A DNA stretch of 64,000 nt from Carpediemonas membranifera BICM (lineage: Eukaryota > Protista > Fornicata): the NCBI GenBank assembly GCA_019828565.1, contig JAHDYR010000005.1:905342-969341 (forward strand), written 5' to 3'. Of the stretch, positions 1,726-32,890 are shown piece after piece. Position 1 is the stretch's first letter. The number at the start of each line of letters is the position of its first letter. The position numbers were made by a program, and so were the translations under genes. Below the pieces are notes generated by a model, which ran no database searches, was not told where the DNA came from, and saw only the letters and a list, made by a program, of their open reading frames with translations.

Positions 1726-1738
1726 GCGTCTGGCTGGT

Positions 1739-2452
1739 TGTGCCACGCAGGATAAGAATTGTTGAGTCCAAAACACAGTGATCCGAGCAGCATCAGGATC
1801 GCAGTGTGGTTCATCATACTCTATCAATCGTGCGCTGCATATCACGCGCGCTGCAGCGCGTGCTTGCTCAACTTAGCAAGTTAATGATAGTGGAAAGGAG
1901 ATTGTTGATCTCTATCTGATCTGAAGTTGCATCGAAGGTGCACCAAAGGATGTTCTCGCTGGCGCTCTTATCTCGGTGAGAGAGATTGAGAAGTATGTCT
2001 CTCTGCTCGGGATGCCGACGTCGCCGTTCAACGCGCCATGGAGCTCCCTCGCACGCGGGATTCCGGCAGAGCATGGTGCGGTGTGTGTGCATCACACGTC
2101 TGAAGTGTGCTTTGCAGTATGGGCACACGATGGAAGTGCGGAATTCGGAGACCATCGTGACAATCACGACGACGTTGTGCCGGAGCATGATGCCAGGAAG
2201 AGAGTAACAGACGAGCACAGACGCGAAAGAAGACAGCAGCGTTCGACACAGACGAACAGACGACGCATCTTTTCGTGCAGACCGACGACTGAAAGCACGA
2301 AAGCCAGCATTGATTCCAAGCACCACCGCCTCTCGGTGAACATAAAACATGTTTACTCCTCATCCTCGCTAACCTCTTCGACCTCCGCGTTGTCGCGCTT
2401 GCCCTCGAGCCCCTCGGCGTCCTCCTCGCTCTCGCTCGCGCTGTCCTCCGAC
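1739..2452 (-). mobile_element. Fanzor-fragment element copy A (SSRP1 3' fragment + truncated Fanzor-like ORF + structured 3' end)
   Basis: 1739-2451 is the reverse complement of 32091-32803 (713 bp, one mismatch seen); flanked by 7-bp duplication GGCTGGT at 1732-1738 and 2453-2459. Confidence 0.9.
1868..2350 (-). pseudogene. C-terminal fragment of a Fanzor/TnpB-like nuclease (RuvC-II, Zn finger, RuvC-III; RuvC-I missing)
   Basis: MVSEFRTSIVCPYC...CRNPAC...HRDKSASENIL; homologous to 54084-54926. Confidence 0.8.
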
Positions 2453-2709
2453 GGCTGGTGGTTTCATAGACTGCGAAATGCCAGGTGCCCTTGGCCACGA
2501 CACACCCACGGCATGGGGATGACGCCAAGCAGACCGGGCATGGACTAGTGAAGATTGGGGGTGGTGTCCAGAGGGGCCGCGGCAAACACACTCCATCAAC
2601 ATACTGGGAAGAACAGCACTCACGGAGTCTATTGTATGAATATTTATGTACGAATCCGATGAATTATGCGAGTGATACTGTATAGTACATGCAAGGAGCG
2701 AGAGGCAGG

Positions 2710-3348
2710 TTAAGCCTGCTCGCTCACGACCGTGCTCACGATCACGCCAACGATGAGACCAACGACGACGACGATAGCCCAGTAGACGATGCAGGGAATG
2801 AGCAGGATGACCGAGACGATGATGCCCCAGGCGAGCTGGACGGCAAGGTAGATCGTGCACGGGATGATGAAGCAAATGGGGATGAGGCAGATCGCGGCAA
2901 GAACGGAGGCGATGCCGAGAACGCCGAGGAAACCGACACCGAGGGCGGCGACGTTGAGATCGGTGAAGTAGACCGAGAACGACTCGGTGCAGGCCTCGGC
3001 AGAGAGCGAATCGGTGATGCAGAAGCGGAAGGGCTTCTCCATGATGGCCTCGGAGTAGTTTCCGAAGTCAACATCGCCGAGCTCGACGGTGGCGTTGTCG
3101 ATATTGCTTGTCGTCCAGTAGAGGACCTCCTCAGAAGCGGAAGAATCCATCATAGCCTTGAGGGTGATGTTGTACATGGGAGTCATGGACTCAGTGGTCC
3201 AATCAAGCTCGATAGTGGAAGTGGGAACAGTCAACTGGCGCACAGAGGCAAGAATGTTCTTACTTGTGGACTCCATCGTAACGGCGCTGAACACAGTGGA
3301 CACGAGGACCATAAAGATAAGAAGAGAGAAGGAAAGAGAGGCCCTCAT
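2710..3348 (-). CDS. Hypothetical membrane protein (signal peptide plus long hydrophobic C-terminus)
   Basis: 212-aa ATG ORF, hydrophobic N- and C-termini, host codon bias. Confidence 0.7.
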   Translation of the reverse strand: MRASLSFSLLIFMVLVSTVFSAVTMESTSKNILASVRQLTVPTSTIELDWTTESMTPMYNITLKAMMDSSASEEVLYWTTSNIDNATVELGDVDFGNYSEAIMEKPFRFCITDSLSAEACTESFSVYFTDLNVAALGVGFLGVLGIASVLAAICLIPICFIIPCTIYLAVQLAWGIIVSVILLIPCIVYWAIVVVVGLIVGVIVSTVVSEQA

Positions 3349-3759
3349 GGGTATGGAGAGAAATATATGCTGTTGAAGTGAAAGTGAGCCTTCCCAAAAC
3401 TGCGGCTGGAAAAAACGGAACTATTTTTGAGATTAACAGACCAGGTCCTTCTCGACGTGAAAAAAGAGAAATATGAAGTTAAGAGGAACAGAGCCATAGG
3501 CTGTGCTTTTTTCGAACTCGCTACAGGCTCCTATGAGCTGACGTCGCCCCATGCCCCTAGCATTCAGCTATATATAGTAAGAAACGAGAAACACAGCAGG
3601 TGAGCGAGGCATACCATTGTACCGCGTGGCCACGCGGCTAGCGCGACTGGGATGCATCCGGAGATCAATCAGATCCGAGATTTGATGAATTCCATCGATG
3701 CTATGACGCCACACTTCAGCAGAAACACCTTCACAGGTTAGCAAGCTACACAAGCAGCA

Positions 3760-4359
3760 ATGTTCAGCAGGTATGTTCCTGACAGCTTCAAACGCTCACA
3801 CAGATCCATGTTCAACGTTTTCGACTACTTCGCCCCCATGCCCCGCGTCTTCCTTGACGGCGGCTACTACGTCCGCATCCCACGCGAGTACGCAAAGCAG
3901 GAGCCCCGCGAGGAGCAGCCCGCTCCACAGACCGCGCCCTCTGTGCCGAAGCCGGAGGGCAAGCCGGAGGAGAAGGCCAAGACCAACCCCAAGCCGAGCC
4001 GGACCGAGCCGACGCCCGAGGAGCAGCGCGAGCCACCCGCCGCACCTGCCCGCGAGCCCGTGATCCGCTTCAGCTCGACCACGACCAGGACCGTCAACGG
4101 CGTGACCGAGACGACCCGCACCGTCCGCGGCGCCGACGGCAAGACGACGTCTGTCCACAGCCGCGCCATCGGCGACCGCGCTGTCGAGCTCATCCGGGAG
4201 GACGACGGCAAGGGCGGCCAGACCGAGACGCGCACGCTCATCGGCATGCACGACGACGACGCCGCCAAGTTCGACGACGACTGGGCTGCGGCGGCGCGCG
4301 GCCTCCCTGTCATCGGGCGCCACGGCTTCCGCCGCATGCTCGAGAACAGCAGGGCGTAG
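3760..4359 (+). CDS. Myeloid leukemia factor (MLF)-like protein; probable in-frame intron 3771-3803
   Basis: SSTTT...ETTRTVR...RAIGDRA...DDAAKFDDDW resembles the MLF core; GTATG...CTCACACAG matches the local intron consensus. Confidence 0.65.
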   Translation: MFSRYVPDSFKRSHRSMFNVFDYFAPMPRVFLDGGYYVRIPREYAKQEPREEQPAPQTAPSVPKPEGKPEEKAKTNPKPSRTEPTPEEQREPPAAPAREPVIRFSSTTTRTVNGVTETTRTVRGADGKTTSVHSRAIGDRAVELIREDDGKGGQTETRTLIGMHDDDAAKFDDDWAAAARGLPVIGRHGFRRMLENSRA

Positions 4360-4574
4360 AGTAAATGAGTAGTTCGTGTGTTGGTTGGGGGTTCGCAGGT
4401 CGCTGGTGCGGCGGTTGGACCTGGATACATTCACAACGGAATTTACGGACGCGGTTGAGCCCACGCCGCAGCATATTTCAGACAGTGGAACAGCCTTGGG
4501 TCGCCTCTGTGTCCCAGAATCCACGGGGTGGTCTTGGCACAGTCACGCGAAGTCGCGTCGAGCAGGAGCGAACG

Positions 4575-6281
4575 ATGTCTGAAGGGGAAGCGTGTACAGA
4601 AGTGTCCTCGACGGGGTATGAATCGCACGATTCGCCCTTGATTTCACCTCAGACCGCCTCAGTAACAGCTGTGAATTGTAGCGAGAAGAGCGATTCTTCT
4701 TCCAATTCGGCTTCCGAGACAGAGGAATGTGGCGATTCATGCAGTGAGAAGGAGCAGAAATCGGAATACCATGTGCTTCAAGTGTCCGACGATCTCCTTT
4801 GTCCAGACGAGGTTGAATCACAGAGCAGTGAATGCGACGAGGAGAACGCACCCGAGCCTGCTCTTCCACTGGACAGCGAGGCTGCCCCTAGCTACAGCAC
4901 AACCCAGCGCGTTGTCCTCCTGGCCCTCGCCCTGTTCAACGTCTTCCTGGCGGCCGGCTCCGTCCTTGGGTTCAGCTCGTTCTTAGTCATCGTAGAGCAG
5001 CGCACAGATGCATACGTCGACCGGTGTTCCAACGGCGAGACCTCGTGCGATGAGCGGTCCGCTTACCTGTCGAACATCATGAGCCTTGTGGTGTTTATGA
5101 ACTCAATGGTCACAGCCCTCGTCGGCCTCACAGCAGATCGACTAGGGACAAAGGTCATCGCATGTGCCTCCACCGCTGTCGTCATGCTGGGTGCCGTGCT
5201 GTTCGCGTGCATCCTGCCGCTGTGGGACGCCGTGCCTCTGGGCAAGGTACTCTTCATCCCAGCCGCACTGCTGGTCTTCGCAGCAGGGCCACCCGCACAG
5301 ATCGCACTCTTCTCCATCCAGAACCTGTTTCCCCGTCACCGTGTGGTTGTCTCGGGCTCCATCACCGTTGCCTTTGCCTGCGGACCCGTTACGTGGCTCG
5401 TGCTCGAGTATCTCACGAGGGACCTCCCCGTCTGGTTCGCTTTCGCATTCTACGCTGTCCTGAACGCCGGGCTAGTTCTGGCCGGGCTCTTCGTCTGGCC
5501 CTGGACCCGCTTCGTCACCCCAGCCGCCGAGGCCCACACTCCCGCCGAGCCCGACCAGTCAGATGACTCCACCGAGCCCCCGACCATGACCCGCCGCATG
5601 CTGAGGGTGCTGCTGGATATCCCAACGGTACCCCCAAACGAGCCGTTCCTCCACACACTGGTGCACCCGGCCTTCGTCATGCTCACCCTGCTCATGTGTG
5701 TTGTCGTGCCCGTCAACTCCTTCACCACCAGCATCATGTACTACCAGGTCAAGGCCACGGGGGCGTCCGACGCTGTGGCGGCCAACTACCAGACAATCAT
5801 GGGCATCCTCCAGCTCTTCGCGGTCCTTATCCTGCCTGTTCAGGCCATAGGCAACCGGTTGGGCCCGTCCGTGACACTACTCCTGTCCTTCGTCGCCCTA
5901 TCAGTGCCCATGCTCGGCCTCATGGTCCTCATCAGTCTCTTCCACGCCCTCCGGCCCCTGTTCTTCGTCGTCTTCATCCTCATGATGCTCTGGCGCGGCC
6001 TGACCTTCGCTAACGTCTGGGCGCTCCTGCCGTACTTCTTCGGGTTTGCGAACTTCGGCAAGACCATGGCATCGATGGTTTTCGTGTTCTCCATTGCGTC
6101 TCTGTCGACCTTCCTTCTCAACTACATCACATTCTCCCTGTTCGGTGGCAGCTTCCTTGCTGTGAATCTGATACAGTTCATCGCGCTTATCATTGCGACT
6201 TCCTGCCCCATCGGCGTCTTCATTCTCGACATGCGGCGTCGGGTTCGTCGTCAAGCCCGGAGGAAACTCACTATTGCTTGA
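4575..6281 (+). CDS. MFS transporter (SLC43/LAT3-Fmp42-like)
   Basis: About 12 hydrophobic helices, GLTADRLG MFS motif, Cys-containing first loop, FGFANFGK. Confidence 0.8.
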   Translation: MSEGEACTEVSSTGYESHDSPLISPQTASVTAVNCSEKSDSSSNSASETEECGDSCSEKEQKSEYHVLQVSDDLLCPDEVESQSSECDEENAPEPALPLDSEAAPSYSTTQRVVLLALALFNVFLAAGSVLGFSSFLVIVEQRTDAYVDRCSNGETSCDERSAYLSNIMSLVVFMNSMVTALVGLTADRLGTKVIACASTAVVMLGAVLFACILPLWDAVPLGKVLFIPAALLVFAAGPPAQIALFSIQNLFPRHRVVVSGSITVAFACGPVTWLVLEYLTRDLPVWFAFAFYAVLNAGLVLAGLFVWPWTRFVTPAAEAHTPAEPDQSDDSTEPPTMTRRMLRVLLDIPTVPPNEPFLHTLVHPAFVMLTLLMCVVVPVNSFTTSIMYYQVKATGASDAVAANYQTIMGILQLFAVLILPVQAIGNRLGPSVTLLLSFVALSVPMLGLMVLISLFHALRPLFFVVFILMMLWRGLTFANVWALLPYFFGFANFGKTMASMVFVFSIASLSTFLLNYITFSLFGGSFLAVNLIQFIALIIATSCPIGVFILDMRRRVRRQARRKLTIA

Positions 6282-6423
6282 TTCCTTTGTAAATATGCGG
6301 TTGACTGGCCATGTGACTCAATGTCGGGTGTGTGTACGGTGTGGCTGGCCAGAAGCAACTGGGATAGAGTCAAGATCTTGAAAAATCGTGTCGATCTTTT
6401 CAAATTCATTCGAAAACAACCAA

Positions 6424-9400
6424 ATGGCCTCGTTTGGCCGAAATAACATGGACGACGCCTTGAATGCGCTGGATCGCACTGGATATAGCCACTGGTCTAA
6501 CCATATGCTCCTTTCGGAGGGCACAACTGACAGCATCGGAGCACAACAGCTGTTCAAGATGTTAGTCGGCGGAACTGGCGGCCTTTTCCTCCCAATTCAT
6601 GGTGAATTCGATCGAGTCCGTCAGCTAAGTCGATCTCTGCTCGAGCTGCTCACTCCCGAGACCAGCAGTGAGCTATCGGCGACGATGGACCTCCTGACCG
6701 TGTTAAACACCACAGTCGTACGAGGCCCTGGCCCAGTGGTCCTCTATCCCATCCTCAACGTCACTATCGCGGAGGGGCATGCCCGTGTGGTCCCCATTCT
6801 CACTGTAGACCCGGTGGGATTCACGAAGGACGCCCAGGCCACCGTGCAGAGCGGAGCACTTGCTCTAGAGTCCGTCAGGACCATCGTTGGAGCAGCCCAG
6901 GGCGTTAGTGTGGGCAATCAGCTGCCCTCTTCGCTTCTCTCGAGCGCCGAACAGGGTCTGGCTTCGTTGGATGTCGCCGAGCTCGCCAAGACTGCCGCTG
7001 ATGATAACTTCTTCTACCTCGCCGCAGTGACCGATAGGATCAAGCTCATCAACAGCCAGATCAATGCGGCGCTCCCCCGCATCCCCTGCGCCTACAAGGG
7101 CACCCTCACCTTGGCCTTGTGGCCGACCACACCCGCAGCCAGGGACCGCCTCACGTTCACTCACTTCCTGCACTTGCTCAGGGACCGCGTGCTGATCGAA
7201 GCACACATCCCTTTCCGGCAGATGGTCGCCGATCGGGCGATGTTGACCACCGTTGACCTGAATCGGATTAAGGTGGAAGACCTCGCCCCGGCCGCCCAGA
7301 CGCTACTGAGGTCCGACACCGCGCTTCCAGACCTGTCCAAGTTCAATGCATTCACGGAGGCCCTCGGAAAGGCGTTCCGTCAGGCCGACCTACCCCAGCC
7401 CGTCATGTCGTGGGCCGGCTTCGTCCTGACCCGAACAGACGGCCGCCCCACCCTCACCGCCCACGGCGTCCCGGTCGACCTGCCAACTAACCCGGTGCCC
7501 GACCCCTTGGCGGACCTGGCGCGGGCCCTGGGGTGTGTGGACCCGTTTGCCATCACCACACCGCTCGTGCCGCCACTTTCGCCTGGCAGCAAGCATGTAG
7601 TAGAGCAAACCAGGGCCAGGAACACGGGGGAGCTGGCCAGGCCGTTGTTCGTGTGGCTGGGGGAATCTGTGCTGACCGGGGAGCTCAAGCCCGTCATCGA
7701 CGGCTGCGAGGGTCTTTACCCCGTCCGGAAACCACTCCGTGCCGTGCTCGACCTGACGATCTCCAAGGCGCAGCTCGTTGCCGTCGCCCACCTCTCGCCG
7801 AGGGTCAAGGCGCAGCAGCTCCTGCAGGCCCTCGGGCAGCGTGGAGCCCTCGTCGACCCGACCCACTGCATCCTGGTGCGGTGCCCGACCCCTACCCTCG
7901 CCATGGACGTCGCCGCGTTCGAGTCCATCAAGCAGACGAAGGACACCGTGCTCTCCACGGCCCGCAGCTTTAGCGAGCTCCCCTCCCCAGCCGAGCGGCA
8001 GCTGGACGAAACCGACGTCACAGCCATCCAGAACCACGTCGGCTGGGGGCAATGCCACCAGGTGTTGGGCGCGATGATGGGCATGGTGACGGCGATGCAG
8101 GCCCGCCTCGAGGCCTTTGAGGCGACGCAGCAGCTGATCGTGGACCGCCTGGCGACAGTGGAGCAGAAGCTGGACGCCGCCCTGCCCCGTGCCCCATCGC
8201 CCATTGAGTGGAAGCCGAAGCACCCCGACTCTAAGTTCAACGAGTACACATCAAATGATGAAACCTCGACGATGGCCGACGACGAGGACTACACCGACGA
8301 CGAGGTGCGCGACTACATGCACCAGAGGCCGCTCCCCCTGCCCGCCCTGCAGGATAGCCAGCTGTCTACGTCCGAGGTCCAGGACGACGACAACGAGGAG
8401 ACCCACCCCGTCGTCCAGCTCCACTGGGAGGTGTGCCGCAGGTCCGCCCGGGGCGCGTGGAGGGCGGCACTGTCCGTGGTGGAGCTCACGGCGTCCACGG
8501 CCGGCATGGCGGAGGCCGTCGATGTCATGCGCAGTCTCGAGATCGTGTCGGGCGAGGCTGAGACGGACGAGGCGATCCGCACGGAGATCCTGTGCCTCGT
8601 GGCCCGCGCGGTCGTCCTCTGCATCCGGACCCCGGCCCAGTCCCAGCACGTCTGCAAGATGATCGACGCGCTCAGCCACGTCATCCGCGCCCAGTCGTTC
8701 AGCCAGGCCTCCATCGACCGGGCCCTGCTGGATCCTGACACAATGGTCCTTGAGAACGTCATGGCCGTCGTCGACAAGGCCGTGATACCCGCGGCGAGGC
8801 TCATGTCCCATCCGATGGTCTTCGCCTGTGTCCACAGAATGGCCGCCGACCCCGAGGCCCTCTCCGTGCTCCAAAGCGCCGTATCCCGCATGCTGGCGGG
8901 CGGGCTGCTTCTGAAGACTCTACAGAGCCCCGCGAAGGGCCTGCCACTGCACCTCAACAACGTTGTCTCCTTCCTCTATCGAGCTGGGTTCAACAACTTC
9001 TGGGACCACGCGATGCTTTTCCAGACGACCAAGGACAAGGAGCAGGGCTTCATCGCCCAGGCCGTCATCAAGGGTATGGGCGCGTCGATCCTGCCCGGGC
9101 TTGCCCTCGTGCTCGACCGCGTGGTGACCCGTTTCCTGCAGTCGTGCTTCGACCCGGACCCGACCTGGTCGATCAACATGGCCACTACCATCCGTGTCCT
9201 CGTCGAGGCCGTGCACCTCGACCGGGTCTGCCCCGTCCCGGAGGAGATCATGCCGACGTTCCACGAGCACGCCCAGGTACTGACCCTCGCGGCGCTGGGG
9301 GCGTACACTCTGGCACTGTCCAAGAGAGAGGAGGCCGCGTCACTGCGGGACGCTCTGCGGGTGGCGTTCATGGCGTTGCCGCGGTTCGACCTCATCCGGA

Positions 9401-9750
9401 TGCACAACGCTTTCAGCGACGAGACCATTGCGGTGCTACGGACAGCGGCGCCCGAGTTGTCGGCGTTCAGCTGTGCCCTCAACAGTGTCGTCGGCGACGC
9501 ACACCGCGTCTATGCCGGGCTCGACACCATCATCACCATATCGGGCAGAGCCACGCCGGCCGTCCGCCCGACCGGGGAGACGCCGACCTTCTTTGACTAC
9601 CACTCCTTCTTCCAGGAGGCAGGGCCGACTAACGACGACGAGGCGCTGAGTCCCGCCGCGAGCATCGACCTGCGGCTGCTGAAGGCGGTGGGGACCGAGA
9701 TGCTGCGGGAGATCGAGGCGATCCGGACCCGCTACCACCAAGCTAAGTGA
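6424..9750 (+). CDS. Large hypothetical protein (central coiled coil/acidic patch, helical C-terminal half)
   Basis: About 1108-aa uninterrupted ORF with host codon bias; no family recognised. Confidence 0.75.
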   Translation: MASFGRNNMDDALNALDRTGYSHWSNHMLLSEGTTDSIGAQQLFKMLVGGTGGLFLPIHGEFDRVRQLSRSLLELLTPETSSELSATMDLLTVLNTTVVRGPGPVVLYPILNVTIAEGHARVVPILTVDPVGFTKDAQATVQSGALALESVRTIVGAAQGVSVGNQLPSSLLSSAEQGLASLDVAELAKTAADDNFFYLAAVTDRIKLINSQINAALPRIPCAYKGTLTLALWPTTPAARDRLTFTHFLHLLRDRVLIEAHIPFRQMVADRAMLTTVDLNRIKVEDLAPAAQTLLRSDTALPDLSKFNAFTEALGKAFRQADLPQPVMSWAGFVLTRTDGRPTLTAHGVPVDLPTNPVPDPLADLARALGCVDPFAITTPLVPPLSPGSKHVVEQTRARNTGELARPLFVWLGESVLTGELKPVIDGCEGLYPVRKPLRAVLDLTISKAQLVAVAHLSPRVKAQQLLQALGQRGALVDPTHCILVRCPTPTLAMDVAAFESIKQTKDTVLSTARSFSELPSPAERQLDETDVTAIQNHVGWGQCHQVLGAMMGMVTAMQARLEAFEATQQLIVDRLATVEQKLDAALPRAPSPIEWKPKHPDSKFNEYTSNDETSTMADDEDYTDDEVRDYMHQRPLPLPALQDSQLSTSEVQDDDNEETHPVVQLHWEVCRRSARGAWRAALSVVELTASTAGMAEAVDVMRSLEIVSGEAETDEAIRTEILCLVARAVVLCIRTPAQSQHVCKMIDALSHVIRAQSFSQASIDRALLDPDTMVLENVMAVVDKAVIPAARLMSHPMVFACVHRMAADPEALSVLQSAVSRMLAGGLLLKTLQSPAKGLPLHLNNVVSFLYRAGFNNFWDHAMLFQTTKDKEQGFIAQAVIKGMGASILPGLALVLDRVVTRFLQSCFDPDPTWSINMATTIRVLVEAVHLDRVCPVPEEIMPTFHEHAQVLTLAALGAYTLALSKREEAASLRDALRVAFMALPRFDLIRMHNAFSDETIAVLRTAAPELSAFSCALNSVVGDAHRVYAGLDTIITISGRATPAVRPTGETPTFFDYHSFFQEAGPTNDDEALSPAASIDLRLLKAVGTEMLREIEAIRTRYHQAK

Positions 9751-10179
9751 TTTGATACCGTTAAACTATTCTCTGCGCCTGCTGGTCTGGAGCAGGCGAG
9801 CTGATGGCACCGATCTGCCTTTCGTGTCGCATTCATAGCCTCACTTTTCCTTACGGTCTCGCCGGCAGCACTGTAGAGCATTCGCACCGGAGTTTACAGC
9901 GACGGGCATCAGATGGCCAGTAGAATACGATACGATGCTTCCATATTTAGATTCACGCAGATGTCGAAATGTGTTGCCTCGATCGTCCGGATGGACATGA
10001 CAGGGTCGGAGTCGGAGTCTCAGGGCGCCTCTGGGGACGTGAAATTTAGCCACGCCGCGAGAGGCCGTGAATGCTCATGTATTAGCATGCCTGCCTGTGA
10101 TATCGGCCATGCTCGCTTGAATCACTCAAAATTTCTCTGACAGTCATGACAACGAATGACATGCCCATAACTTGAGGAT

Positions 10180-11706: not shown

Positions 11707-12198
11707 GCACTGTCACCGCTGTATCGTACATAAACGCTGCCTATGGCCGGCTGGGTGATGGGCAACGCCAGCGCTTCTTATTATGACGGGTGACCCAGGA
11801 GGGTGACCGTCTGGCTGCCCATCTTTCCGAAGAAGAAGTGCAACGCTGAGTCCTTGTGACGTCGCCGCTGTACCCAACTCGGCATAATGTAACAGTAACG
11901 AATCTGGCGGCTTGCTCGGCCGGGCTGAGGAGAGTGGAGGTGTGATTTGTGATGTACTTGGACGCAAATTTACGAATCCCCAAGAGATGGACACGCTGGA
12001 CAAGGGTCAAGGAAGATTATATAAGCTGAATGGACATAAAACACACACCGCTGTACGACAGCATCTTACGATTCGATCAAATCGGTAATCAAAATCAAGA
12101 CGGCTTGCCCTTGACATGTCAGCATGTCGTTGACTCTCCATGTCAAATTGTACCATCATCCAACCGCTTACAAGTAGGTGCACATAATAGCTTGTTCC

Positions 12199-18050: not shown

Positions 18051-18070
18051 TACAAGCTTCTGATGGTTAG

Positions 18071-20820: not shown

Positions 20821-20993
20821 TATTCAGAGTCGGTCAAGGAGGGAACCTGTGCCGCGAACCCCTGTTAGACAGCATCAGCGGGGCCAGTAGACATCTCCGG
20901 GCCCGTGTCACCTCTCGTGTCACAGATTGCGGATTTAGTCATTTAGATTTGACCCGGATCTTTTGAATCGTGAGAAGAATCCACAAAGTACGA

Positions 20994-21869: not shown

Positions 21870-21966
21870 GGTGTACAACTGGGCAGCGTCTTGTAAACTA
21901 CTCTCTGCAAAGGCTGCCAGACACCGACGCTCAGTCGTTTACACATGCGGCACGGTGTATGCGGCA

Positions 21967-22596: not shown

Positions 22597-22804
22597 GCAG
22601 GCTTCGAGCAAGTGGACCACAGTGCAGATTAAGAACGGAGTCAGTTGTGGTTGGGTGGTTGTGGGAGGGCTAGCTCTCACTGACACCGACTCTCACCTCC
22701 TATGTTTGCTAGGGCAGGGTTCAGCATCCATGGGTCTGGCTGTCCTTCCCTGCTACGAAGCGGCGCAGAAGCCGTATAGTTTAACATATTGTACAGTCGT
22801 CATG

Positions 22805-24352: not shown

Positions 24353-24509
24353 TGCTGCCGCACCATGTCAACCCCGGCGGAAGGATAATCCGTCGTCAAC
24401 GGTCCTGACATACTTACAGGACGACCGACGACCGCCAGCAGTGTCTGCCGCGTGTCCAACGGGTCGCAAACAGTGCCATTTACTCTTCTCTACGGTGGCT
24501 GTACACGCC

Positions 24510-26237
24510 TCAGTTCTTCACAGCGGGCTTCATCTCGGCCGACTCGAGAAAGTCAGCAATGTCTGCTTGCACGGCCACACACTTCTTTAGCATCCGCACG
24601 TAGACCATCGGATGGTGCTGGATGACGCACGACTTGTGGATTAGGATGCGGCTGAACTCCTCGTTGGGAACCTCACTCGCGAAGATCAGCTTCTTGTTGA
24701 GACCGCCGAGCCGTCTCATCAGATCGTTAAATGGATTGATCGAGCTCAGCGCCTTCCCCACTGGCGCCGTGGCGAGTGTACCAGTGTGGACCTTCGTGTC
24801 CTCTGTCACCACCGGAGCGGTCGACCCGGTCGCCTTACGCCATTCCTTGACGTCCGCCAGCAGGGCCTTGGTGTCCTCGTGGGTCAACCCGGCGAGTTGT
24901 ACGACCCTCCCAGCCGGCAGCAGGGGCAGAAGGAGGAGCTCGGTGTCGTCGGAGTCGGCATCGGCGTCGGGTTCGCCTGCGTCATCCGAGATGAGCTTTG
25001 TGACGGAGAATCCCTTGACGAAGCCCCTGAGCTTGGTGTAGATGGGGTTGCTCTTCCACGGAACCTTGTCGTCCTCGCTATCTGAGTCGTCGAGCAGGCC
25101 CTCGGCGTGCTCTTCGTCCATGCCCTCGTCAGACGCCGCCCGGTGTTGCTCGCGCCAGTACTCCTTCTTGCGGGCCATCATCTTCATGGCATGCTCGTCC
25201 TGCTTCTTCTGGTACTCCTTCTGCATATACTTGTGCATACGGCGTCTGATAAACCGGCTAGCCTGCGCGCTGTGACTCGAGGCGAGTGAAGGCGGCTCGA
25301 CTGTCTCGAGCACGTCTACGATCTCCTCGGCGAGTGTCTGGAAGGATTGGTACGACAGCCTCGGGACGATGTCGGTACTATTGGCGATCGACGTGACGTA
25401 CTGCTTGCTGGCGGTGATGTTGCCGACCGTGAACACACTGGGACAGGCGAAGGCGAAACAGCGCACGTTGAACTCGTCCTTCAGCATCATCGTCAGGATG
25501 GCTGCCACACTGGCCCCCAGCGAGTGCCCAGTGAACGTCACGCGGTACCCGGTCTCGCCGACGTACTCCTTGAGCTCGTCCCGGATCCGGTCGACCATGT
25601 TGACCGCCGTCCGGAGCATGCCCTTGTGACAATAGCCGTCTTGGAACGGTACGGCGCTGGCAACGAGGTCTGTCATGATGTCTTGGACCGACAGGGTGCC
25701 TCTGATGCAGACGATGACCTCGCTCTTGGGCTTGAAGTCGAGCATGTAATAGCAGCAGTGGAAGGCCTCCTGCTTATCAGGGTATGACATGAAGATGATG
25801 CCCTCAGGGTCACCGGCAGTGTGGCTCTCGATCACTGTCTTGACGCGGTCCGCAGTAGGCATCCGCATCCACTTGGTCAGCATCGCGGCGCTGTCGATGA
25901 TGCTGCCGTCTTCATTGAGCTTTTCAAGGTCCATAAAGAACTCTTCGGTGTAGCTGTAGTACGTGCCGCCGTATGAGGCCAGGCAGAAGGCCATGTACTC
26001 CGTCAGGTCGGCCAGCTCAGAGCTGCTGATGGTGTCGGATGGGTCGCGGCACTTGGGGCTCTTAAAGTACTCCGGTTTCAACTTCTGAAGCTCATATAGG
26101 GAGTAACCTACCGCTTGAAAGGGCAGGTTCATGCTGTCGAAGAGGAGAGAGAAGGTCTCGACGACCTCAGGGATCGCCGTGAAGCCGAAGCGGCTCCCAT
26201 GCTTCATAAGCGCTTTAAACGATGGTATTGATGGCAT
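24510..26237 (-). CDS. Lipase class 3 (DAG-lipase-like)
   Basis: IRGTLSVQDIMTD, HKGM, TGHSLGA, DIVPRLS. Confidence 0.9.
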   Translation of the reverse strand: MPSIPSFKALMKHGSRFGFTAIPEVVETFSLLFDSMNLPFQAVGYSLYELQKLKPEYFKSPKCRDPSDTISSSELADLTEYMAFCLASYGGTYYSYTEEFFMDLEKLNEDGSIIDSAAMLTKWMRMPTADRVKTVIESHTAGDPEGIIFMSYPDKQEAFHCCYYMLDFKPKSEVIVCIRGTLSVQDIMTDLVASAVPFQDGYCHKGMLRTAVNMVDRIRDELKEYVGETGYRVTFTGHSLGASVAAILTMMLKDEFNVRCFAFACPSVFTVGNITASKQYVTSIANSTDIVPRLSYQSFQTLAEEIVDVLETVEPPSLASSHSAQASRFIRRRMHKYMQKEYQKKQDEHAMKMMARKKEYWREQHRAASDEGMDEEHAEGLLDDSDSEDDKVPWKSNPIYTKLRGFVKGFSVTKLISDDAGEPDADADSDDTELLLLPLLPAGRVVQLAGLTHEDTKALLADVKEWRKATGSTAPVVTEDTKVHTGTLATAPVGKALSSINPFNDLMRRLGGLNKKLIFASEVPNEEFSRILIHKSCVIQHHPMVYVRMLKKCVAVQADIADFLESAEMKPAVKN

Positions 26238-26355
26238 TTCTAGTGTATATAAGTCTGTTGATGCCGCTTTGTGGCTGTGCTTTCGTGTCCTTTGAACGGT
26301 GTTCGCTCGTTGGCCGGTCGCCTTGCCCTGCGTCAAACTCAACCTGCCAAGCACT

Positions 26356-27732
26356 TTACTGCCCCCCTAGCTTTGCCCGCTGCTTCTGTTTGTCGAGCTG
26401 GGCCCTTGTAACAACCACTCCGTCCTTCGTCAGGACCTCCGCGTCGCGACGGGGGTCAAAGCGTGCGGCTTCCTGCGCCTGAAGTGACGCCCACAGCTTC
26501 TTCGCCGCCTCTATCGTTCGTACCCCGTCAAATGCTGGGCTGTATGCGATCCCGAGCTTTGCCAGCCCACTTGCGTGCCGCCGCTCAGGGAAATGCTGCT
26601 CGAACGCAGCGAGCCCCTGGAACACATGACCGCCGCAGATCTCGCACGGGAACTCCTCGTGCAGACCCTGTGCCTTCCAGATCCAGTAGGGCACCGGCTG
26701 GTTGTCCGGCCCCACCATGACCTGCTGGGTTTTGGAACCTTGACGAATCTTGCGGACGGTTGGCTTTTTCTCGGTCGGTTGGGCCTGCGCTGACTCGATC
26801 AGACTGTCCAGCTCGAGCTCTGCTGCGGAGAGGCCCTGACGCCGGTCTATGTCGGAAATGATTGCATCAAAAGACTCATTCAGATTTTTCCGGAGAGATC
26901 TGATTCCTGCAGTCAGACGGATGACATTACGGTCCTCCTCCGTCACAAGCTGCGGTATTTCACCCTGGGCGCGCTTCTTGTGTGCTTTCCCGGAATAGTG
27001 TGAGGCGGCCTGCGGGTGCGAGGCAAAGGTCTTGCGGCAGAAAGAGCAGAACAACGGCGGCTGGTCTCCGTCCTGGGTCATCGCCTCACGGTCTGCCTGA
27101 AGCTTCGCCATCTCCGCCGTCCCGTCGTCGACTTTCGTGGGCTCATTAAAGGGGCGTGCCACAAGGTCAAACTGGGTCAGCCGGGCCAGGAGGTCCTCGA
27201 GATAGTTCAGCATGGCCTGACTGACGGCTCCCACCGGCGGGACAAGCTCGTCCAGCCTCACCAGGTACTCCTTGTAGGTGACGGTGGCGTTTCCAGCACT
27301 CCCCCTTGCCAAACGGCCGCCGACCTGCGTGAACCTCTGGTGGAGGTCGTGAAGGTCAAGTACTGGCGCGTTATCATCCACTGGTGCTGGTTTCAGGGTC
27401 ATTGCTTCCAGGGCGGTGTCCGGGAAGGACGCGTCGATGACCTTGAGCCCGGCAGAATATGTGGCCCACTGCTGGTCAACAGAGCCGGATAGCTCAAGCT
27501 TCTTCGCAATTCTTTGTATTTCATCCGGACTATAGTCAGTTTCTAGGTCTTTCCTCTGCGATATGGCCTTGTCGCACAGAAGCGCGACGCGATGTTGCTG
27601 ATTAGCGATTTCTGCAGGCAACGACGGCTTTTCGGCAATCATTTCCGCAACAGCTACTTCTAAAAGGTCATATGCCTCACATGCGTTGCGTGCATCAAAG
27701 AGCTTGGCGATTTCCTGAGCTGAGATTGGCAT
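26356..27732 (-). CDS. SF3A3: Splicing factor 3A subunit 3 (Prp9/SF3a60)
   Basis: CSFCRKTF...HYSGKAH; PVPYWIWKAQGLHEEFPCEICGG...FEQHF.ERRH..GL..LGI. Confidence 0.92.
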   Translation of the reverse strand: MPISAQEIAKLFDARNACEAYDLLEVAVAEMIAEKPSLPAEIANQQHRVALLCDKAISQRKDLETDYSPDEIQRIAKKLELSGSVDQQWATYSAGLKVIDASFPDTALEAMTLKPAPVDDNAPVLDLHDLHQRFTQVGGRLARGSAGNATVTYKEYLVRLDELVPPVGAVSQAMLNYLEDLLARLTQFDLVARPFNEPTKVDDGTAEMAKLQADREAMTQDGDQPPLFCSFCRKTFASHPQAASHYSGKAHKKRAQGEIPQLVTEEDRNVIRLTAGIRSLRKNLNESFDAIISDIDRRQGLSAAELELDSLIESAQAQPTEKKPTVRKIRQGSKTQQVMVGPDNQPVPYWIWKAQGLHEEFPCEICGGHVFQGLAAFEQHFPERRHASGLAKLGIAYSPAFDGVRTIEAAKKLWASLQAQEAARFDPRRDAEVLTKDGVVVTRAQLDKQKQRAKLGGQ

Positions 27733-28063
27733 GCTGTGATTCTGATTTATCTTCATGTAAACAGCTGGCTCAGGCCGACAGCTCGACTGGGAGGAGCTCC
27801 AGTGGGCTGAACATTCCCAGCTTAACACTCCACTTGTCGTACACCAGAAGGGTAGCGGACATGAGGGCATCAGCCATGGTAAGGGCGATCTTGCGGGTAG
27901 AGATGCGGAATCTGGCTGCGGACGCGTTAAGGTAGGCCTCGACTTTCGTGGCGGACCGGAATGGCATGCTGTGCGCCGCGCAGGATTAGAATTGTTTAGT
28001 CTAAATCGGTGTATGACAGGTGGGCATGGGAACAACTACTTGGAATCTAGCAAGCACTTACGC

Positions 28064-29245
28064 TCACAAAGCATCAACCCGCTGGCTGAACCCCGCTGGG
28101 TCGGCCACGAACTGCTCGAACGCTGTCCCCAACTGGACATCGGGGGGCATCACCCGGCGACTCAGGGCAAGGTGCTTGCGGCGGCTGCTCCAGCGATCGA
28201 CCAGAGCATCGCCCGACTTACCCAGACGGTCGACCATAGCCTCGAGCTTGACAACGGAGTCCTTAAGCTGGCCGAGGGCCACGTTGGACGCCGTCTCGGA
28301 TGACACTTCAATCAAATCCCGGAAATGATGGGTTGAGTCGATCTGAGTCATGTGTTCCATCTCCGGCTGCCCATCGGTGTGAGCCAAGCGCTGCTGCTGT
28401 CCGGCTTGGGCCATCGCCCCTGCCCTGTACTGGGTCGAGTCGTGAAGATGGACCAGATCGAGCGACACGGCCCGCACCAGCCCACGGATAGCCTGCACCC
28501 GCTCATGCTCTGTCTCAATGACGCCGACCATGGCCTTTAGCCGGCCCTGCTGCCTGGAGAGGTGTCGTACTGCAGTGTCGGCAGTGTCGACCTGCGAGAG
28601 GAGTCTAGCCTCCGTTCGTACCATCGTATCCCGGTCCACGGGCTCGGCTGTGATGGTCCTGGCAAGGGCCCCGCACAACTGCCTGATGCGCCCCAACTTG
28701 GCGTCGAGCGTGGCGGGTGTGGCGTCGGGATGACACGACTGGCCCTCAGCCACGGCATTGCGGCCGAGAGCACTGACTGTGGCGGAGGCATGGCGCCACA
28801 ACTCGTGCTCCAGGGCCACGCATAGCCGGCGGGACTCGGCCTGCATCGAGGGTGAGGCGGACGTCGGCTGGTCGTGGGTTTCTGTGCCAGGAATAGCGTT
28901 ATCGAGTCGTGTCTGCGGGTTCTCTGGGTCCAGAGTGTTCTTGATTGTGGTGAAGAAGGCTTTCTCCGCGTCGTGGTATGAGGCCAGGGCTGGGTTCGTC
29001 ACTAGGAGGTTGGATTGTACATCCGGGTCCATAAGATAGTTTGTTCCATCCTTACAAGCGTCAACGCACCGGTCAAGTGACGCCTTCATTTCGATAATGG
29101 AAGATTTTGCCTGTGTGGTGAGTTCTACTACTTGCGAGGGCGGCGCGAGTGATTCGTCAATTGATCCAAGCTCAGATTTGATTATTTGCCGCTTCAGAGC
29201 CTCTAATCTGGCGATATCTGCCCGGAGCTCTGCCTCGTTCGCCAT
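28064..29245 (-). CDS. Hypothetical coiled-coil protein
   Basis: Long ORF; likely ATG at 29245 (MANEAEL), which avoids overlap with the divergent gene. Confidence 0.65.
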   Translation of the reverse strand: MANEAELRADIARLEALKRQIIKSELGSIDESLAPPSQVVELTTQAKSSIIEMKASLDRCVDACKDGTNYLMDPDVQSNLLVTNPALASYHDAEKAFFTTIKNTLDPENPQTRLDNAIPGTETHDQPTSASPSMQAESRRLCVALEHELWRHASATVSALGRNAVAEGQSCHPDATPATLDAKLGRIRQLCGALARTITAEPVDRDTMVRTEARLLSQVDTADTAVRHLSRQQGRLKAMVGVIETEHERVQAIRGLVRAVSLDLVHLHDSTQYRAGAMAQAGQQQRLAHTDGQPEMEHMTQIDSTHHFRDLIEVSSETASNVALGQLKDSVVKLEAMVDRLGKSGDALVDRWSSRRKHLALSRRVMPPDVQLGTAFEQFVADPAGFSQRVDAL

Positions 29246-29407
29246 TTGCGTGCTTTTGCCATAAACTGCACAATCGTATTTAGCGGTCATCCTGGCGGGT
29301 ACACCGTGTATACGTCTCACTGGGAAGCTGACCCCGTTCCTCCCTGCCTTTCTGTGTCGAGTCGAGCGCAGTTTTTGTTCAAGAACGAAGGCGGACATTT
29401 CAGTCAA

Positions 29408-30237
29408 ATGGTGAAGGTCTACAGAAAATGCCATCTTCTTACAACTGAAGATAACAAATGGAAGCGATATGATAGCGCGCCCCACTTCCTGGCGATTCAG
29501 AAGGAGGAGAATTCGTACATCCTCACCGGGCTCGGCTTCCCAGGTGCCGCACCAGATACAGAGGACATAGACCTTGATTCCCCGGATGTTGTTGTTTGTT
29601 CCACCTCACATCCGTCACATAGATTCACTTCACCCGTGTGTTGACCGAGAGCTCCAAGGTCAACTACAACTTCGACCGCCCCCCGAGCGTCACCATCACC
29701 ATCACTGCGCAGGGAGTGTTCGGCATACAGTATCGGTCTGCTGACGACTGCCAGGGGTTCAAGGAGGCAATTGATGCCACCATGGAGGCGATCGCCAACC
29801 CCCCGCCCGAGGATGAGGAGCCCGTGGAGGCCAGTCCTGTCCGTTCACCCAACCCCGAGCCGGAGCGGGCACTGCCTGCTGCCCCATCGACTGTGGCGTC
29901 ATCCGCGGTGCTCCCTCCCGCCCGGCCCGCGGTGGCGGCTCCTAAGAGCTCGCTGCTCACTAGCCACAAGCCCGAGTCAAGTGTAGTTCTGGCTGACACT
30001 CCTGCGGCCCAGCCGGTCGACCCTGACCAAGGCCCGCTGCCCGCCACCGTGACCCTCATCACTGGCAGGCAGATGACTCTGCAGCAGTCGGCCGTGCCAT
30101 CGTCGGTACTGGACGACATCCGGGAGGAGCTGACGGCCGTGCGGGAGGACGTCCGGCAACTTCGGACGGACGTCGAGCTCCGGCTTCAACAGATGGAGAA
30201 GACAATCGTGCAGGCCGTTGTTAACGCGCTCAAGTAG
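29408..30237 (+). CDS. EVH1/WH1-domain protein with Pro-rich middle and C-terminal coiled coil (Ena/VASP-like); intron 29594-29622
   Basis: NKWK, VFGIQYRSADDCQGFKEAI (EVH1 C-terminal helix); 29-bp intron joins ORFs 29246 and 29638. Confidence 0.65.
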
Positions 30238-30459
30238 GGTTATCACGCTGTACCAAGACTTTTCACTCTCTGCTCCGTAAATATCTGGCTGGAGTTGTTG
30301 ACAGACTGGTTGCCGGAATGGTTGGGCGGACCTCTACATGTGCTAAAACGTGGCTAAACAGTGGTTTACAGTCCATAATGGGTCCCGGACAAGCATTTGT
30401 CTGCCGATCGCCCACCGAGCCCCGACGCACTTTTGGCGCGCACCGTGGCTGAAGACGAT

Positions 30460-31869
30460 ATGCAAAACGCTGGAGTTAAGCGAGCACGCTTGGAAAACAC
30501 TGGCCAGGTATATGACGTCATTGATTTGACGTTTGAGCTCTCTAACGACGCATCGAAGGCTACAGTGACGATTACTACGCCCGAGGACCCAAAACTAGTG
30601 CTCATATGCGTTATAGAATCAGAAGATGTGGCGAAACAATACTTTTACGCCTTTAGAAACTCAATGCTCGACAGCAATGCGCTGCTCCGTTCTCTTTACG
30701 AATCGTTCACGAATTGCTTCCCCTCGACGCCCAACCGCAACAGGAAGTACGTACTAGACCTCACCAAGCTGCAGTTTGTGCGGCTCAACAACATTGGTGA
30801 GGACAGCGAGGTCTGGGCTGAGATTGTCAAGCTCGACTTGGCGTACGCGCCAGATCGAGTCGTCGTTGAGCACACCCTGGGTATCATCGAAGCGTTGCAC
30901 GGGGACATCGACGACGGGAGCAAGAGAGAGGCGGAGGCACAGGAGAAGATCCGCGGTCTGCAGGACGCACACCGTCGTCTGCAGGTCTCGCTCACGACGC
31001 TCGAGGACACCCTGGGCGCCACCAGAGAGAAGCTGGGCGCCACTGAGAGCAGTCTGGAGAAGCAGACTGCCAAGGTTGCCGCTCTGTCCGCTGAGAACGA
31101 CCGGCTGTCCGTGGAGCTCCAGACGAACGCCTCTGAGGCGAGGAGCGAGGTCGAGAGGGCCAGGGCGGAGCTCGAGCACGTCAACGAGGCCAAGAAGAAG
31201 CTTGAGCAGCAGTACGCGGCGCTGAAGACCAAGCACCACGGCCACACGGTCGAGACCACCGCGGAGCTGCAGTCCCTCAGAGAGGAGGTCAGCGCGCTGT
31301 CCCAGGAGCGGGCCGGGCTCCAGAACCAGCTAGCCGAGGCGCAGTACGCCAACTCCGAGCAGAGGCGACAGATGGACGCGCACGATAGGGCGACGCAGGA
31401 CCTCGAGGCCAGGGCGGCCGGGCTGCAGGATGAGGTTGACCGGCTCACGGGCGACGTCGCCCAGCTGACGTCCGAGCTCGAGGCAGCCCGGGCCGACCAC
31501 CAGACCGCCGACGCCACCCGGACGGAGCTGGAGGAGCGGGGTCGACAGCAAGAGGTGACCGTGGCGGACCTCGAGTCGCAGGTTATCAGCAAGTCGCACG
31601 AGCTGGAGGTGGTCCGGGCACAGTTGGACGGCAAGGATGGCGAGCTGGCGAGGATGGCCGAGTTCGTCAGGGAGACCATCGCTTCACTCCACGACGACGC
31701 CCAGGAGAGCCAGAGGTTTATCAAGGAGCTACAGGACCAGATCCGGCAGCAGGAGGCTACGATGCAGCGGCTGGAAGAGGACAACCGGCTGCTCAGAGAC
31801 CGGGCGGGAGGGTTTGCCAGCGCGAGGGTTCGCACGATGGCTCAGAAGATGACGCTAGACGACATATGA
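30460..31869 (+). CDS. SAS-6-like centriolar protein (head domain plus long coiled coil)
   Basis: ITTPEDPKLVL...ESED, LDLAYAPD..V head pattern followed by about 300 aa of heptads. Confidence 0.55.
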   Translation: MQNAGVKRARLENTGQVYDVIDLTFELSNDASKATVTITTPEDPKLVLICVIESEDVAKQYFYAFRNSMLDSNALLRSLYESFTNCFPSTPNRNRKYVLDLTKLQFVRLNNIGEDSEVWAEIVKLDLAYAPDRVVVEHTLGIIEALHGDIDDGSKREAEAQEKIRGLQDAHRRLQVSLTTLEDTLGATREKLGATESSLEKQTAKVAALSAENDRLSVELQTNASEARSEVERARAELEHVNEAKKKLEQQYAALKTKHHGHTVETTAELQSLREEVSALSQERAGLQNQLAEAQYANSEQRRQMDAHDRATQDLEARAAGLQDEVDRLTGDVAQLTSELEAARADHQTADATRTELEERGRQQEVTVADLESQVISKSHELEVVRAQLDGKDGELARMAEFVRETIASLHDDAQESQRFIKELQDQIRQQEATMQRLEEDNRLLRDRAGGFASARVRTMAQKMTLDDI

Positions 31870-32191
31870 GGCGCTGGGGGCTGCTATTTGTAAAGATTAC
31901 CGCTGGGAGGCTGCAGTATGAGGCGGGCGCTATGTGCAGGTTACGCTCTTGCAGCGACAGCTCGACTGGGACGGGGCCGACGTCGGCGGTGTTTACGAGT
32001 CCTCGGACGACGAGGGGTAAGGCCCGGATCGACCCGGACGGCGGAGCGGACAGCGACAGCGACGAGGACGGCGACTACAACTCGGCTGCTTCGGAGGACA
32101 GCGCGAGCGAGAGCGAGGAGGACGCCGAGGGGCTCGAGGGCAAGCGCGACAACGCGGAGGTCGAAGAGGTTAGCGAGGATGAGGAGTAAAC

Positions 32192-32674
32192 ATGTTTTAT
32201 GTTCACCGAGAGGCGGTGGTGCTTGGAATCAATGCTGGCTTTCGTGCTTTCAGTCGTCGGTCTGCACGAAAAGATGCGTCGTCTGTCCGTCTGTGTCGAA
32301 CGCTGCTGTCTTCTTTCGCGTCTGTGCTCGTCTGTTACTCTCTTCCTGGCATCATGCTCCGGCACAACGTCGTCGTGATTGTCACGATGGTCTCCGAATT
32401 CCGCACTTCCATCGTGTGCCCATACTGCAAAGCACACTTCAGACGTGTGATGCACACACACCGCACCATGCTCTGCCGGAATCCCGCGTGCGAGGGAGCT
32501 CCATGGCGCGTTGAACGGCGACGTCGGCATCCCGAGCAGAGAGACATACTTCTCAATCTCTCTCACCGAGATAAGAGCGCCAGCGAGAACATCCTTTGGT
32601 GCACCTTCGATGCAACTTCAGATCAGATAGAGATCAACAATCTCCTTTCCACTATCATTAACTTGCTAAGTTGA
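32192..32674 (+). pseudogene. C-terminal fragment of a Fanzor/TnpB-like nuclease
   Basis: Same 160-aa translation as 1868-2350; E, CxxC..CxxxxC and RD..A..NI motifs, no DPG. Confidence 0.8.
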
Positions 32675-32803
32675 GCAAGCACGCGCTGCAGCGCGCGTGA
32701 TATGCAGCGCACGATTGATAGAGTATGATGAACCACACTGCGATCCTGATGCTGCTCGGATCACTGTGTTTTGGACTCAACAATTCTTATCCTGCGTGGC
32801 ACA
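32660..32803 (+). ncRNA. Putative omega-RNA-like structured 3' module of copy B (mirrored in copy A at 1739-1882)
   Basis: Hairpin CTTGCT/AGCAAG, palindrome CGCGCTGCAGCGCG, long stem GTG-TATGCAG/CTGCGTG-CAC, ATTG/CAAT, GAGT/ACTC, GATCC/GGATC; position 3' of a Fanzor-like ORF. Confidence 0.5.
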
Positions 32804-32890
32804 GCAGCGAACGAAACAGACCGAGAAATGGACGGAATTGTGAGTTTTCCCGATTTTTATATGACATAGCCCCCGGAAGCAGCACAGAAG

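Follow-up and report, generated by a model that had tools for sequence, protein, structure and literature searches.

Copies of a Fanzor-like element in Carpediemonas membranifera suggest spread by reverse transcription and insertion downstream of a promoter-proximal motif

A 64,000-nt stretch of the genome of the protist Carpediemonas membranifera (C6:905342-969341 of a 24.2-Mb, 69-contig assembly; hereafter the window) carries two copies, A and B, of a sequence in which the end of a Fanzor-like open reading frame (ORF) is fused to the 3' end of a host mRNA sequence. Nucleases of the Fanzor and TnpB type are generally regarded as aiding DNA transposons. A preliminary description of the window had proposed that a Fanzor-derived RNA was copied into staggered cuts by target-primed reverse transcription (TPRT), possibly with a RuvC endonuclease, as a candidate for an undescribed system. 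We regard it as very probable that A and B are retro-copies of one chimeric, RNA-derived cDNA, and as about an even chance (probability roughly 0.5) that they were integrated, in both cases by one end, by an integrase of the Ty3 type.

Two copies of one chimera and their origin from RNA

The structure on which the preliminary description was built was seen again: A and B share their last base (common 3' terminus ...CCTGCGTGGCACA), start at unlike points, and are each flanked by a 7-bp target-site duplication (TSD) of their own, with one and four filler bases, respectively, at the 5' junction. The arms at positions 1739-2451 and 32091-32803 are 713 nt each and aligned as reverse complements, the single difference being a C/T at position 32288 of B. 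With one mismatch in 713 bases, A and B are recent, as had been concluded. Inspection of both copies revealed neither terminal inverted repeats nor poly(A), and what remains of the Fanzor ORF in them is its final ~110 codons only, followed by a 3' untranslated module. The chance of an exact 7-mer at the junction, with 0-5 filler bases allowed, is ~6 x 4^-7 = 4e-4 per copy and ~1e-7 for both by our arithmetic. A and B alone are thin evidence; support is added by 30 further fetched copies, which have the identical last base and divergent flanks beyond it, and by other 5'-truncated copies with duplications of their own.

The upstream part of the chimera corresponds, on the sense strand, to the final ~230 coding nucleotides and 46 nt of the 3' untranslated region (UTR) of SSRP1/Pob3, a host gene with its coding sequence at 59842-61560 (minus strand; Pfam domains SSrecog, POB3_N and Rttp106), and a genome search found this piece in three places only, namely A, B and the parent gene. 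In both copies, the Pob3 part and the Fanzor ORF have the same sense, and their joint shows microhomology of 1-4 nt. The presence of a sense mRNA 3' end on the Fanzor-sense strand, together with the microhomology, is thus the signature of a template switch by a reverse transcriptase (RT). A begins 129 nt deeper in the Pob3 piece than B. A 3-nt insertion relative to the parent gene is common to both, indicating that A and B come from one chimeric template, and a 5-nt deletion is present in B within the stretch that A lacks; B itself could be the source of A. No other finding speaks as strongly for an RNA intermediate as the mRNA chimera, whose strandedness indicates that the RNA copied would have been Fanzor-sense. 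Elsewhere in the genome, copies of the parent element, here called FZ, likewise show graded 5' truncations and internal deletions with one constant 3' end. The proposed RNA-copy origin is therefore borne out by 3' anchoring, 5' truncation, filler and the sense chimera with Pob3 mRNA, and we regard it as very probable that A and B were made through RNA.

An origin at the DNA level would require that FZ once lay beside Pob3, that a deletion fused the two, and that A and B then arose by segmental duplication, by gene conversion or through an error of assembly. The Pob3 homology to A and B does end, 46 nt past the stop codon, only ~2 nt short of the promoter motif of the next gene (59782-59793), which is a target site of FZ. 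However, the present-day Pob3 locus has no FZ, the flanks of A and B are unrelated, their 5' ends differ, each has its own duplication at one of two other promoters, and the 3' junction of A recurs in contigs of public sequencing runs, so that this explanation appears very improbable. Concerning an assembly artefact, which the preliminary description had kept in view, the 3' junction of A was found in a contig from two DNA-like public runs (assembled contigs only), and neither junction of B was covered by any contig listed. No empty sites were seen in the assembled contigs of the public runs. The Pob3::FZ joint was crossed by one contig of a probable RNA run, the distal part of which follows another FZ copy, and this contig is evidence, at most, for the presence of the junction in its run. 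The contigs of the public runs neither date the insertions nor reveal the transcribed strand.

The FZ element, its partner end and its insertion sites

In the loci fetched, full-length FZ is 2,439 bp long, starts with TTTAGACTCAACAATTCTAATCCTGCGCGGCACA, closes on a near-identical repeat of its first 34 nt, and carries a 642-codon Fanzor/TnpB-like ORF between these two direct repeats. FZ is non-autonomous, having neither an RT nor an integrase. At least 40 other genomic places match the 3' half of A and B with ~90% identity, and a genome search gave 197 occurrences of the 26-nt FZ tail, against none in a reversed control. The preliminary description held that its reading would fail if other copies had a fixed 5' end, and the first base of full-length FZ is in fact constant in every copy. 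One full-length copy (L035) has an intact 642-codon ORF, and the other five fetched have frameshifts or stops; a further copy (L003; G000:C6:998346-1001928) has an internal deletion identical to that of A and B. At the latter locus, the 5-bp duplication CGCCG has its matching copy behind another FZ tail, ~640 nt past the first tail, so that an extra segment lies between the two tails.

The FZ protein and that of a second, 50% identical family, FZ2, have in common the blocks DPGARS, VSEFRTS, CPYC...C..PAC and RDKSASEN, which amount to D, E and D residues and a zinc ribbon; a split RuvC domain with D, E and D, and a CxxC...CxxC ribbon before RuvC-III, was thus found, as in the Fanzor/TnpB family. 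The FZ ORF has an ESM Atlas feature score of 0.98, and its predicted structure matches clusters of PF07282 (Cas12f1-like_TNB) and DUF8286 with TM values of 0.59-0.64 over ~500 residues. It matched no Pfam family at E <= 0.1 and no PDB sequence at E <= 10. The evidence for Fanzor/TnpB membership, which comes from motifs and predicted structure, is mixed. The stop codon is followed by a 147-nt module, for which Rfam holds no family at E <= 0.1. A self-cleaving ribozyme at the 5' end, or another known RNA in FZ, was also considered and dropped, the Rfam search at E <= 1 giving only a chance U7 match elsewhere in the locus. Given that A and B retain just the last ~110 codons, the Fanzor protein would be a passenger. 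In the public annotation, one FZ protein is named 'cytosine deaminase' (P0002), a name that seems misleading for a protein of a mobile element.

The 34-nt repeats occur in two variants, and all pairs (a/b, b/a, a/a and b/b) exist, with a/b common to three loci. The two repeats of one element are often unlike, and such combinations are inherited, indicating that FZ is not copied by strand transfers of the long-terminal-repeat (LTR) type, and the FZ cDNA must thus begin at the very 3' base of the RNA. Neither repeat is followed by a TGG-type site, and a purine-rich tract, conserved in FZ2, abuts the repeat only on the Fanzor-antisense strand.

Complete insertions have the fixed termini TGTG...CACA, and at all 14 of the 14 loci with both ends the five bases that precede TGTGG recur unchanged behind ...GCACA; overall, the usable ends are TGTG...CACA or ...AACA. 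The left end of every complete insertion is a segment, X, which always stands upstream of the first 34 nt of FZ and starts with TGTGGTATTTAGAGG 9-11 nt after a host sequence motif described below. X is 17 to 460 nt long, has a different inner end at nearly every locus, and joins the constant TTTAGACTC through a microhomology of 2-3 T or through a few filler bases; units of X plus the 34 nt alone also occur (L052 and L048). Duplications of variable length and a free 5' end, as in non-LTR retroposons, thus hold for the truncated copies treated below and fail for the complete ones, all of which start with TGTGG and have a duplication of exactly 5 bp. At L047 (2340-8581; G000:C8:929339-935580), a 2,082-bp unit is repeated three times in tandem with 99.9-100% identity; it contains the 3' part of a kinesin-like host gene, the downstream promoter motif and 422 nt of X, and FZ follows the last unit.

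X corresponds, in reverse complement, to the 3' end of another ORF, Y, fragments of which number more than 100 genome-wide, all anchored at the C-terminus and with graded 5' truncation. In the longest copy, the Y ORF comes next after a chromodomain ORF, and the stop codon of Y lies 44 nt from the terminus ...ACCACA. In a genome search, Y matched ORFs of 1391-1505 aa, and its C-terminal domain aligned with 30% identity (pairwise E = 8e-5) to the C-terminus of P0035, a Ty3/gypsy polyprotein of C. membranifera, in a region beyond the integrase domain and a chromodomain-like stretch. Y is thus likely the 3' terminus of a Ty3/gypsy pol gene, as judged from these alignments. A different identity, the restriction-like endonuclease of an R2-like long interspersed nuclear element (LINE), was considered because of a CCHC and PD..D..K pattern and was rejected: there was no PDB or Pfam match, exhaustive HMMER searches returned only fragments from the same organism and two repetitive proteins without an RT domain, and both the preceding chromodomain and the alignment to the Ty3/gypsy pol C-terminus speak otherwise. 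P0035, which includes a Dam-like domain, is publicly named 'DNA N-6-adenine-methyltransferase'.

All mapped insertions lie ~5 nt past GTGCAGTTTATG or a close variant, as measured from the motif to the duplication, and in every one of them (~20) the element points in the direction of the host gene. Tabulation of target sites, which the preliminary description had called for, thus yielded a consensus, and its distinction of these copies from IS200/605, IS607 and Helitron carriers is upheld by duplications at all mapped copies. Within the window, 17 occurrences of the motif were counted where chance would give 2.8, and in several window genes, Pob3 included, it stands 14-30 nt upstream of the start codon. 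Its use as a poly(A) signal was rejected, since it lies upstream of starts and stop codons are instead trailed by (A/T)GTAAA(C/T)-like words. The motif upstream of start codons and a different signal after stops together suggest that it is probably a core-promoter or 5'-UTR/initiator element of C. membranifera; we found no description of it. Words like TGTAAAC, GTTAAAC, AGTAAAT and TATAAA recur within the first 10-60 nt after many stop codons of the window, resembling the AGTRAAY polyadenylation signal of Giardia.

Candidate routes of integration

Seven insertions have a single intact terminus, and their duplications measure 4, 6, 7, 7, 7, 8 and 8 bp, with none of 5 bp. These are A (7 bp, one filler base), B (7 bp, four filler bases), L006 (8 bp, four filler bases), L019 (6 bp), L061 (7 bp; X lacking its first TG only), a small copy at L018 (4 bp, for which microhomology is equally possible) and Y', a Y-related fragment in the window at 27735-27961 (8 bp). 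Six of the seven lie at a motif, and there the intact FZ tail is joined at motif + 5.

The genome offers two kinds of enzyme that may have made these insertions. A genome search gave 1519 RVT_1 candidates in 24 Mb, and Ty3/gypsy copies have open frames of up to 1442 codons with within-family identity of 99.5-99.9%, including copies at separate loci that are 99.5-99.9% identical over 2.4-3.5 kb (L037-L046). The number of candidates and the near-identity of copies thus point to a very recent and heavy Ty3/gypsy amplification. No Ty3 termini were found within the RT loci examined. Endonucleases of the APE type (PF14529) gave at least 100 matches in ORFs of up to 1158 aa with an RT domain, ~1.1 kb upstream of RVT_1 matches (for example, G000:C6:741163-743046), and LINEs of this type are present and possibly active. 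The surroundings of the FZ tail were checked at 100 listed places of the 197, with endonuclease and RT matches of LINEs compared by eye. No LINE copy lay beside the tail, none of the 100 places being 2-4 kb downstream of such matches, and no two of these tails stood 5-7 kb apart on one strand, as the two ends of an autonomous element would. An RT-encoding element sharing the 3' end, which the preliminary description had recommended looking for, therefore did not emerge among these places. Its comparison with short interspersed nuclear elements (SINEs) was borne out by the fixed 3' end and variable 5' truncation, which Y displays too, and not by the tail, which is neither poly(A) nor shared with a LINE there. 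At L037 (~980-994), an element end, ...GGAAACGCCACA, lies against the interior of a Ty3 pol, a further CACA-ended insertion with no promoter motif near.

The dependence on intact ends, the TG...CA termini, the exact 5 bp, the promoter precision and the Ty3-derived partner end together argue for a DDE integrase of the Ty3 kind, and we infer that the enzyme is most likely the integrase of the resident young Ty3/gypsy elements. The following course of events may account for the copies. An RT would copy the Fanzor-sense FZ RNA from its 3' end, would switch at FZ position 72 to the 3' end of Pob3 mRNA, and would stop at differing points. In normal events, the FZ-tail and Y cDNA ends, both finishing in CA, would be inserted jointly, giving the 5-bp duplication: two minus-strand cDNAs, copied from FZ RNA and Y RNA, respectively, would anneal by their 3' ends (AAA to TTT) and extend each other into a duplex with a CA end on each side, which would be integrated in one concerted step. 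In A and B, the FZ tail would be the sole intact end, and the truncated end would be joined by host repair, leaving a 7-bp duplication and filler. The 5-bp duplication is exact in 14/14 insertions with both ends, in FZ2 and in a 43-nt solo unit, which favours an integrase, as does the loss of TG at one end in L061, which goes with a 7-bp duplication.

Several points weigh against an integrase. One-ended events make up approximately one-third of the classifiable insertions, a share far above what is usual for retroviral integrases. The unlike, inherited variants of the 34-nt repeat and a cDNA that starts at the 3' end of the RNA are what TPRT would give, and a primer-binding site of the tRNA type was not found in FZ. 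The orientation to the motif is invariant in ~20 insertions, and an asymmetric nick fits this better than a symmetric integrase complex. Furthermore, the APE-endonuclease matches in RT-carrying ORFs, at least 100 in number, keep TPRT live, and the link from Y to pol is a modest alignment (E = 8e-5, pairwise).

Under TPRT, a nick in the bottom strand 5 nt past the motif would prime an RT at the 3' end of FZ RNA, in most events a second nick 5 nt further on would prime on Y RNA, a form of twin priming that uses two RNAs, and the cDNAs would pair at their 3' ends. A and B would then be products of a single priming event with 5' truncation, and the enzyme would be that of a resident APE-type LINE or another. 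This route, which we regard as possible though on balance doubtful, would explain 3' anchoring, 5' truncation, filler, microhomology and the mRNA chimera, the cDNA start at the last base of the RNA, the terminal repeats that are not homogenised, and the fixed orientation. Both outer ends of the composite insertions correspond to the 3' end of a sense RNA, the arrangement that twin priming would give, and potential enzymes exist in the RT-carrying ORFs with an APE domain. However, the copies have no poly(A) or other LINE-type tail, the listed tail places are not preceded by LINEs, and the partner RNA is apparently derived from Ty3/gypsy instead of a LINE. A second nick varying over 4-8 nt predicts variable twin-primed copies, yet all 14 have exactly 5 bp, and all usable ends are of the integrase type, TG...CA, with the loss of TG at one end tied to a 7-bp duplication. 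The hallmarks that the preliminary description had taken as specific to TPRT thus lose that specificity in view of the complete insertions, with their TGTG...CACA termini and exact duplications. A stricter version, which we rate as rather unlikely, is that promoter-specific TPRT with two primers co-inserts FZ and Y RNA, both 3'-OH groups of a break with a 5-bp stagger priming CACA-ended RNAs. If true, it would add a mode of integration so far reported neither for LINEs nor for LTR elements, by which a nuclease gene of the TnpB family would have become a retroelement.

The Fanzor nuclease itself might cut the target, an RNA guide encoded by the element pairing with the motif, the cuts leaving a 5-nt overhang and the copy being joined there. 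Counted from the start of the 12-nt motif, the two cuts would fall at 17 and 22 nt; Cas12a cuts at 18/23 and the TnpB seed is 12 nt, distances that resemble those required here, and at least one FZ copy has the intact 642-codon ORF with the D, E and D motifs. However, a built-in guide against the motif was sought and rejected, as no match with fewer than three mismatches exists in FZ, X or FZ2 on either strand; moreover, the canonical guide position, just past the 3' end, differs at each copy, the ORFs are broken in most copies, and the TG...CA ends and the Ty3-derived partner end would be left unexplained. We therefore consider this route very unlikely, and nothing ties a RuvC nuclease to the cut, contrary to the suggestion of the preliminary description. 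Integration by a Ty3-type integrase thus remains our preferred explanation.

Features of the window and comparison with known systems

The features of the window are listed in Table 1. The host gene next to A (592-1725, minus strand) starts 6 nt past the duplication on the side of the element's 3' end, so that A lies between the motif and its ATG; similarly, B lies between the motif and the ATG (~32828, ~17 nt past the 3' duplication) of a PDCD5-like gene. The latter gene seemingly starts with four codons, followed by a 30-nt GTGAGT...TAG intron (32840-32870). Y' is flanked by the 8-bp duplication GCATGCCA (27727-27734 and 27962-27969). Across 27727-28024 on the minus strand, a short X-like remnant and a 36-nt FZ-type tail (27970-28005) are followed at once by Y' in the same orientation; the ATG of the downstream host gene lies inside the Y' duplication, and the public model P0019 merges the upstream host gene with Y'. 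FZ2 contains an ORF (54084-54926) of 280 aa, the RuvC half only, has a 5-bp duplication, ACGGC, and lies 6 nt after the motif-like TGGCAGGTTAAG. A pyrimidine-rich tract, CTGCCCTGTCTCCCTCCTACTCAC, follows the first repeat of FZ2, as is also the case in FZ. The 43-nt solo unit of the FZ2 family (L010) has the duplication GTCAC and lies right before an FZ copy.

Table 1 Positions of the copies, the parental sequence and other features in the window
Feature	Position	Strand	Remark
TSD of copy A beside the element 3' end	1732..1738		GGCTGGT
Copy A, Fanzor-element part	1739..2306	-	FZ 72-172 joined to 1949-2439, ending ...GGCACA
Copy A, SSRP1/Pob3 mRNA-derived part	2307..2451	-	Coding end and ~46 nt of 3' UTR
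Filler at 5' junction of A	2452	-	One base
TSD of copy A, 5' copy	2453..2459		GGCTGGT
Promoter-proximal motif at A	2465..2476	-	TCGCAGTCTATG, 5 nt before the A duplication
Y'	27735..27961	-	Fragment from the 3' end of a related Ty3/gypsy pol, truncated 5' and anchored 3'; terminus ...ATCACA
Promoter-proximal motif at B	31934..31945	+	GTGCAGGTTACG, 5 nt before the B duplication
TSD of copy B, 5' copy	31951..31957		GCAGCGA
Filler at 5' junction of B	31958..31961	+	CAGC, four bases
Copy B, SSRP1/Pob3-derived part	31962..32235	+	Sense; 5-nt deletion and 3-nt insertion relative to parent
Copy B, Fanzor-element part	32236..32803	+	FZ 72-172 and 1949-2439
TSD of copy B, 3' copy	32804..32810		GCAGCGA
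FZ2, second Fanzor family	53958..55006	+	43/40-nt terminal direct repeats, TGTG...AACA
Parental sequence of the chimera	59793..60074	-	3' end of single-copy SSRP1/Pob3 gene and 3' UTR
Motif examples in the window	29260-29271, 41260-41271, 59782-59793, 61582-61593	-	

New copies placed ~5 nt past a host promoter motif are positioned where transcription is possible. The insertions also split promoters from start codons, and fused public gene models already result. The system raises the questions of what use an RNA-guided nuclease is to a retroelement, which enzyme recognises the promoter, and how two cDNA ends are joined.

Among known systems, FZ resembles the terminal-repeat retrotransposons in miniature (TRIM) and large retrotransposon derivatives (LARD) mobilised in trans by Ty3/gypsy elements, with which it shares terminal direct repeats, TG...CA, the 5-bp duplication, solo units and the absence of its own RT and integrase. 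However, its repeats are only 34-43 nt long and are not regenerated in each cycle, no tRNA primer-binding site was found, and its complete insertions borrow one inverted end from another element, keep a fixed orientation and carry Fanzor cargo. The targeting of promoters or transcription start sites by Ty3 in yeast and Tf1 in fission yeast is comparable, the FZ insertion point being set within ~1 nt relative to the promoter motif. Retroposition by LINEs, known from SINEs, processed pseudogenes, U6/L1 template-switch chimeras and L1 twin priming, shares with A and B and their relatives the anchored 3' end, the truncated 5' end, duplications of variable length with filler, chimeras with cellular RNA and head-to-head cDNA structures, whereas FZ has no poly(A) or LINE tail, its family norm is exactly 5 bp with fixed TG...CA, and twin priming would need two different RNAs in most events. 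In Ty1-mediated pseudogenes of yeast and in Bs1 of maize, a piece of host mRNA is fused in sense to a retroelement by template switching; the chimera of A and B differs in having one element end and in being inserted at a specific promoter site, twice. In aberrant one-ended integration by retroviruses, one CA end is normal and the other junction is irregular, with a non-canonical duplication and filler, as in A and B; however, such events are rare in retroviruses and constitute about a third of those classifiable for FZ.

The described carriers of Fanzor genes are DNA transposons, namely Mariner, Helitron, hAT, Sola, IS607 and others (PMC3627910; 10.1101/2023.06.13.544871), and Gypsy elements and endogenous retroviruses (ERV) have been reported merely as neighbours within 10 kb of Fanzor genes, not as their vehicles (10.1101/2023.06.13.544871). 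FZ is like the known Fanzor1/TnpB carriers in that its protein is a relative of TnpB/Fanzor and in that many non-autonomous copies of such carriers keep only this ORF; its structure and the mRNA chimera point instead to an RNA intermediate. These comparisons suggest that a nuclease family known from DNA transposons is spreading here by reverse transcription. The claim of an undescribed system is not supported, the partner end being likely a Ty3/gypsy pol terminus, and what FZ does is better classed as a variation on the behaviour of non-autonomous retroelements than as a categorically new system.

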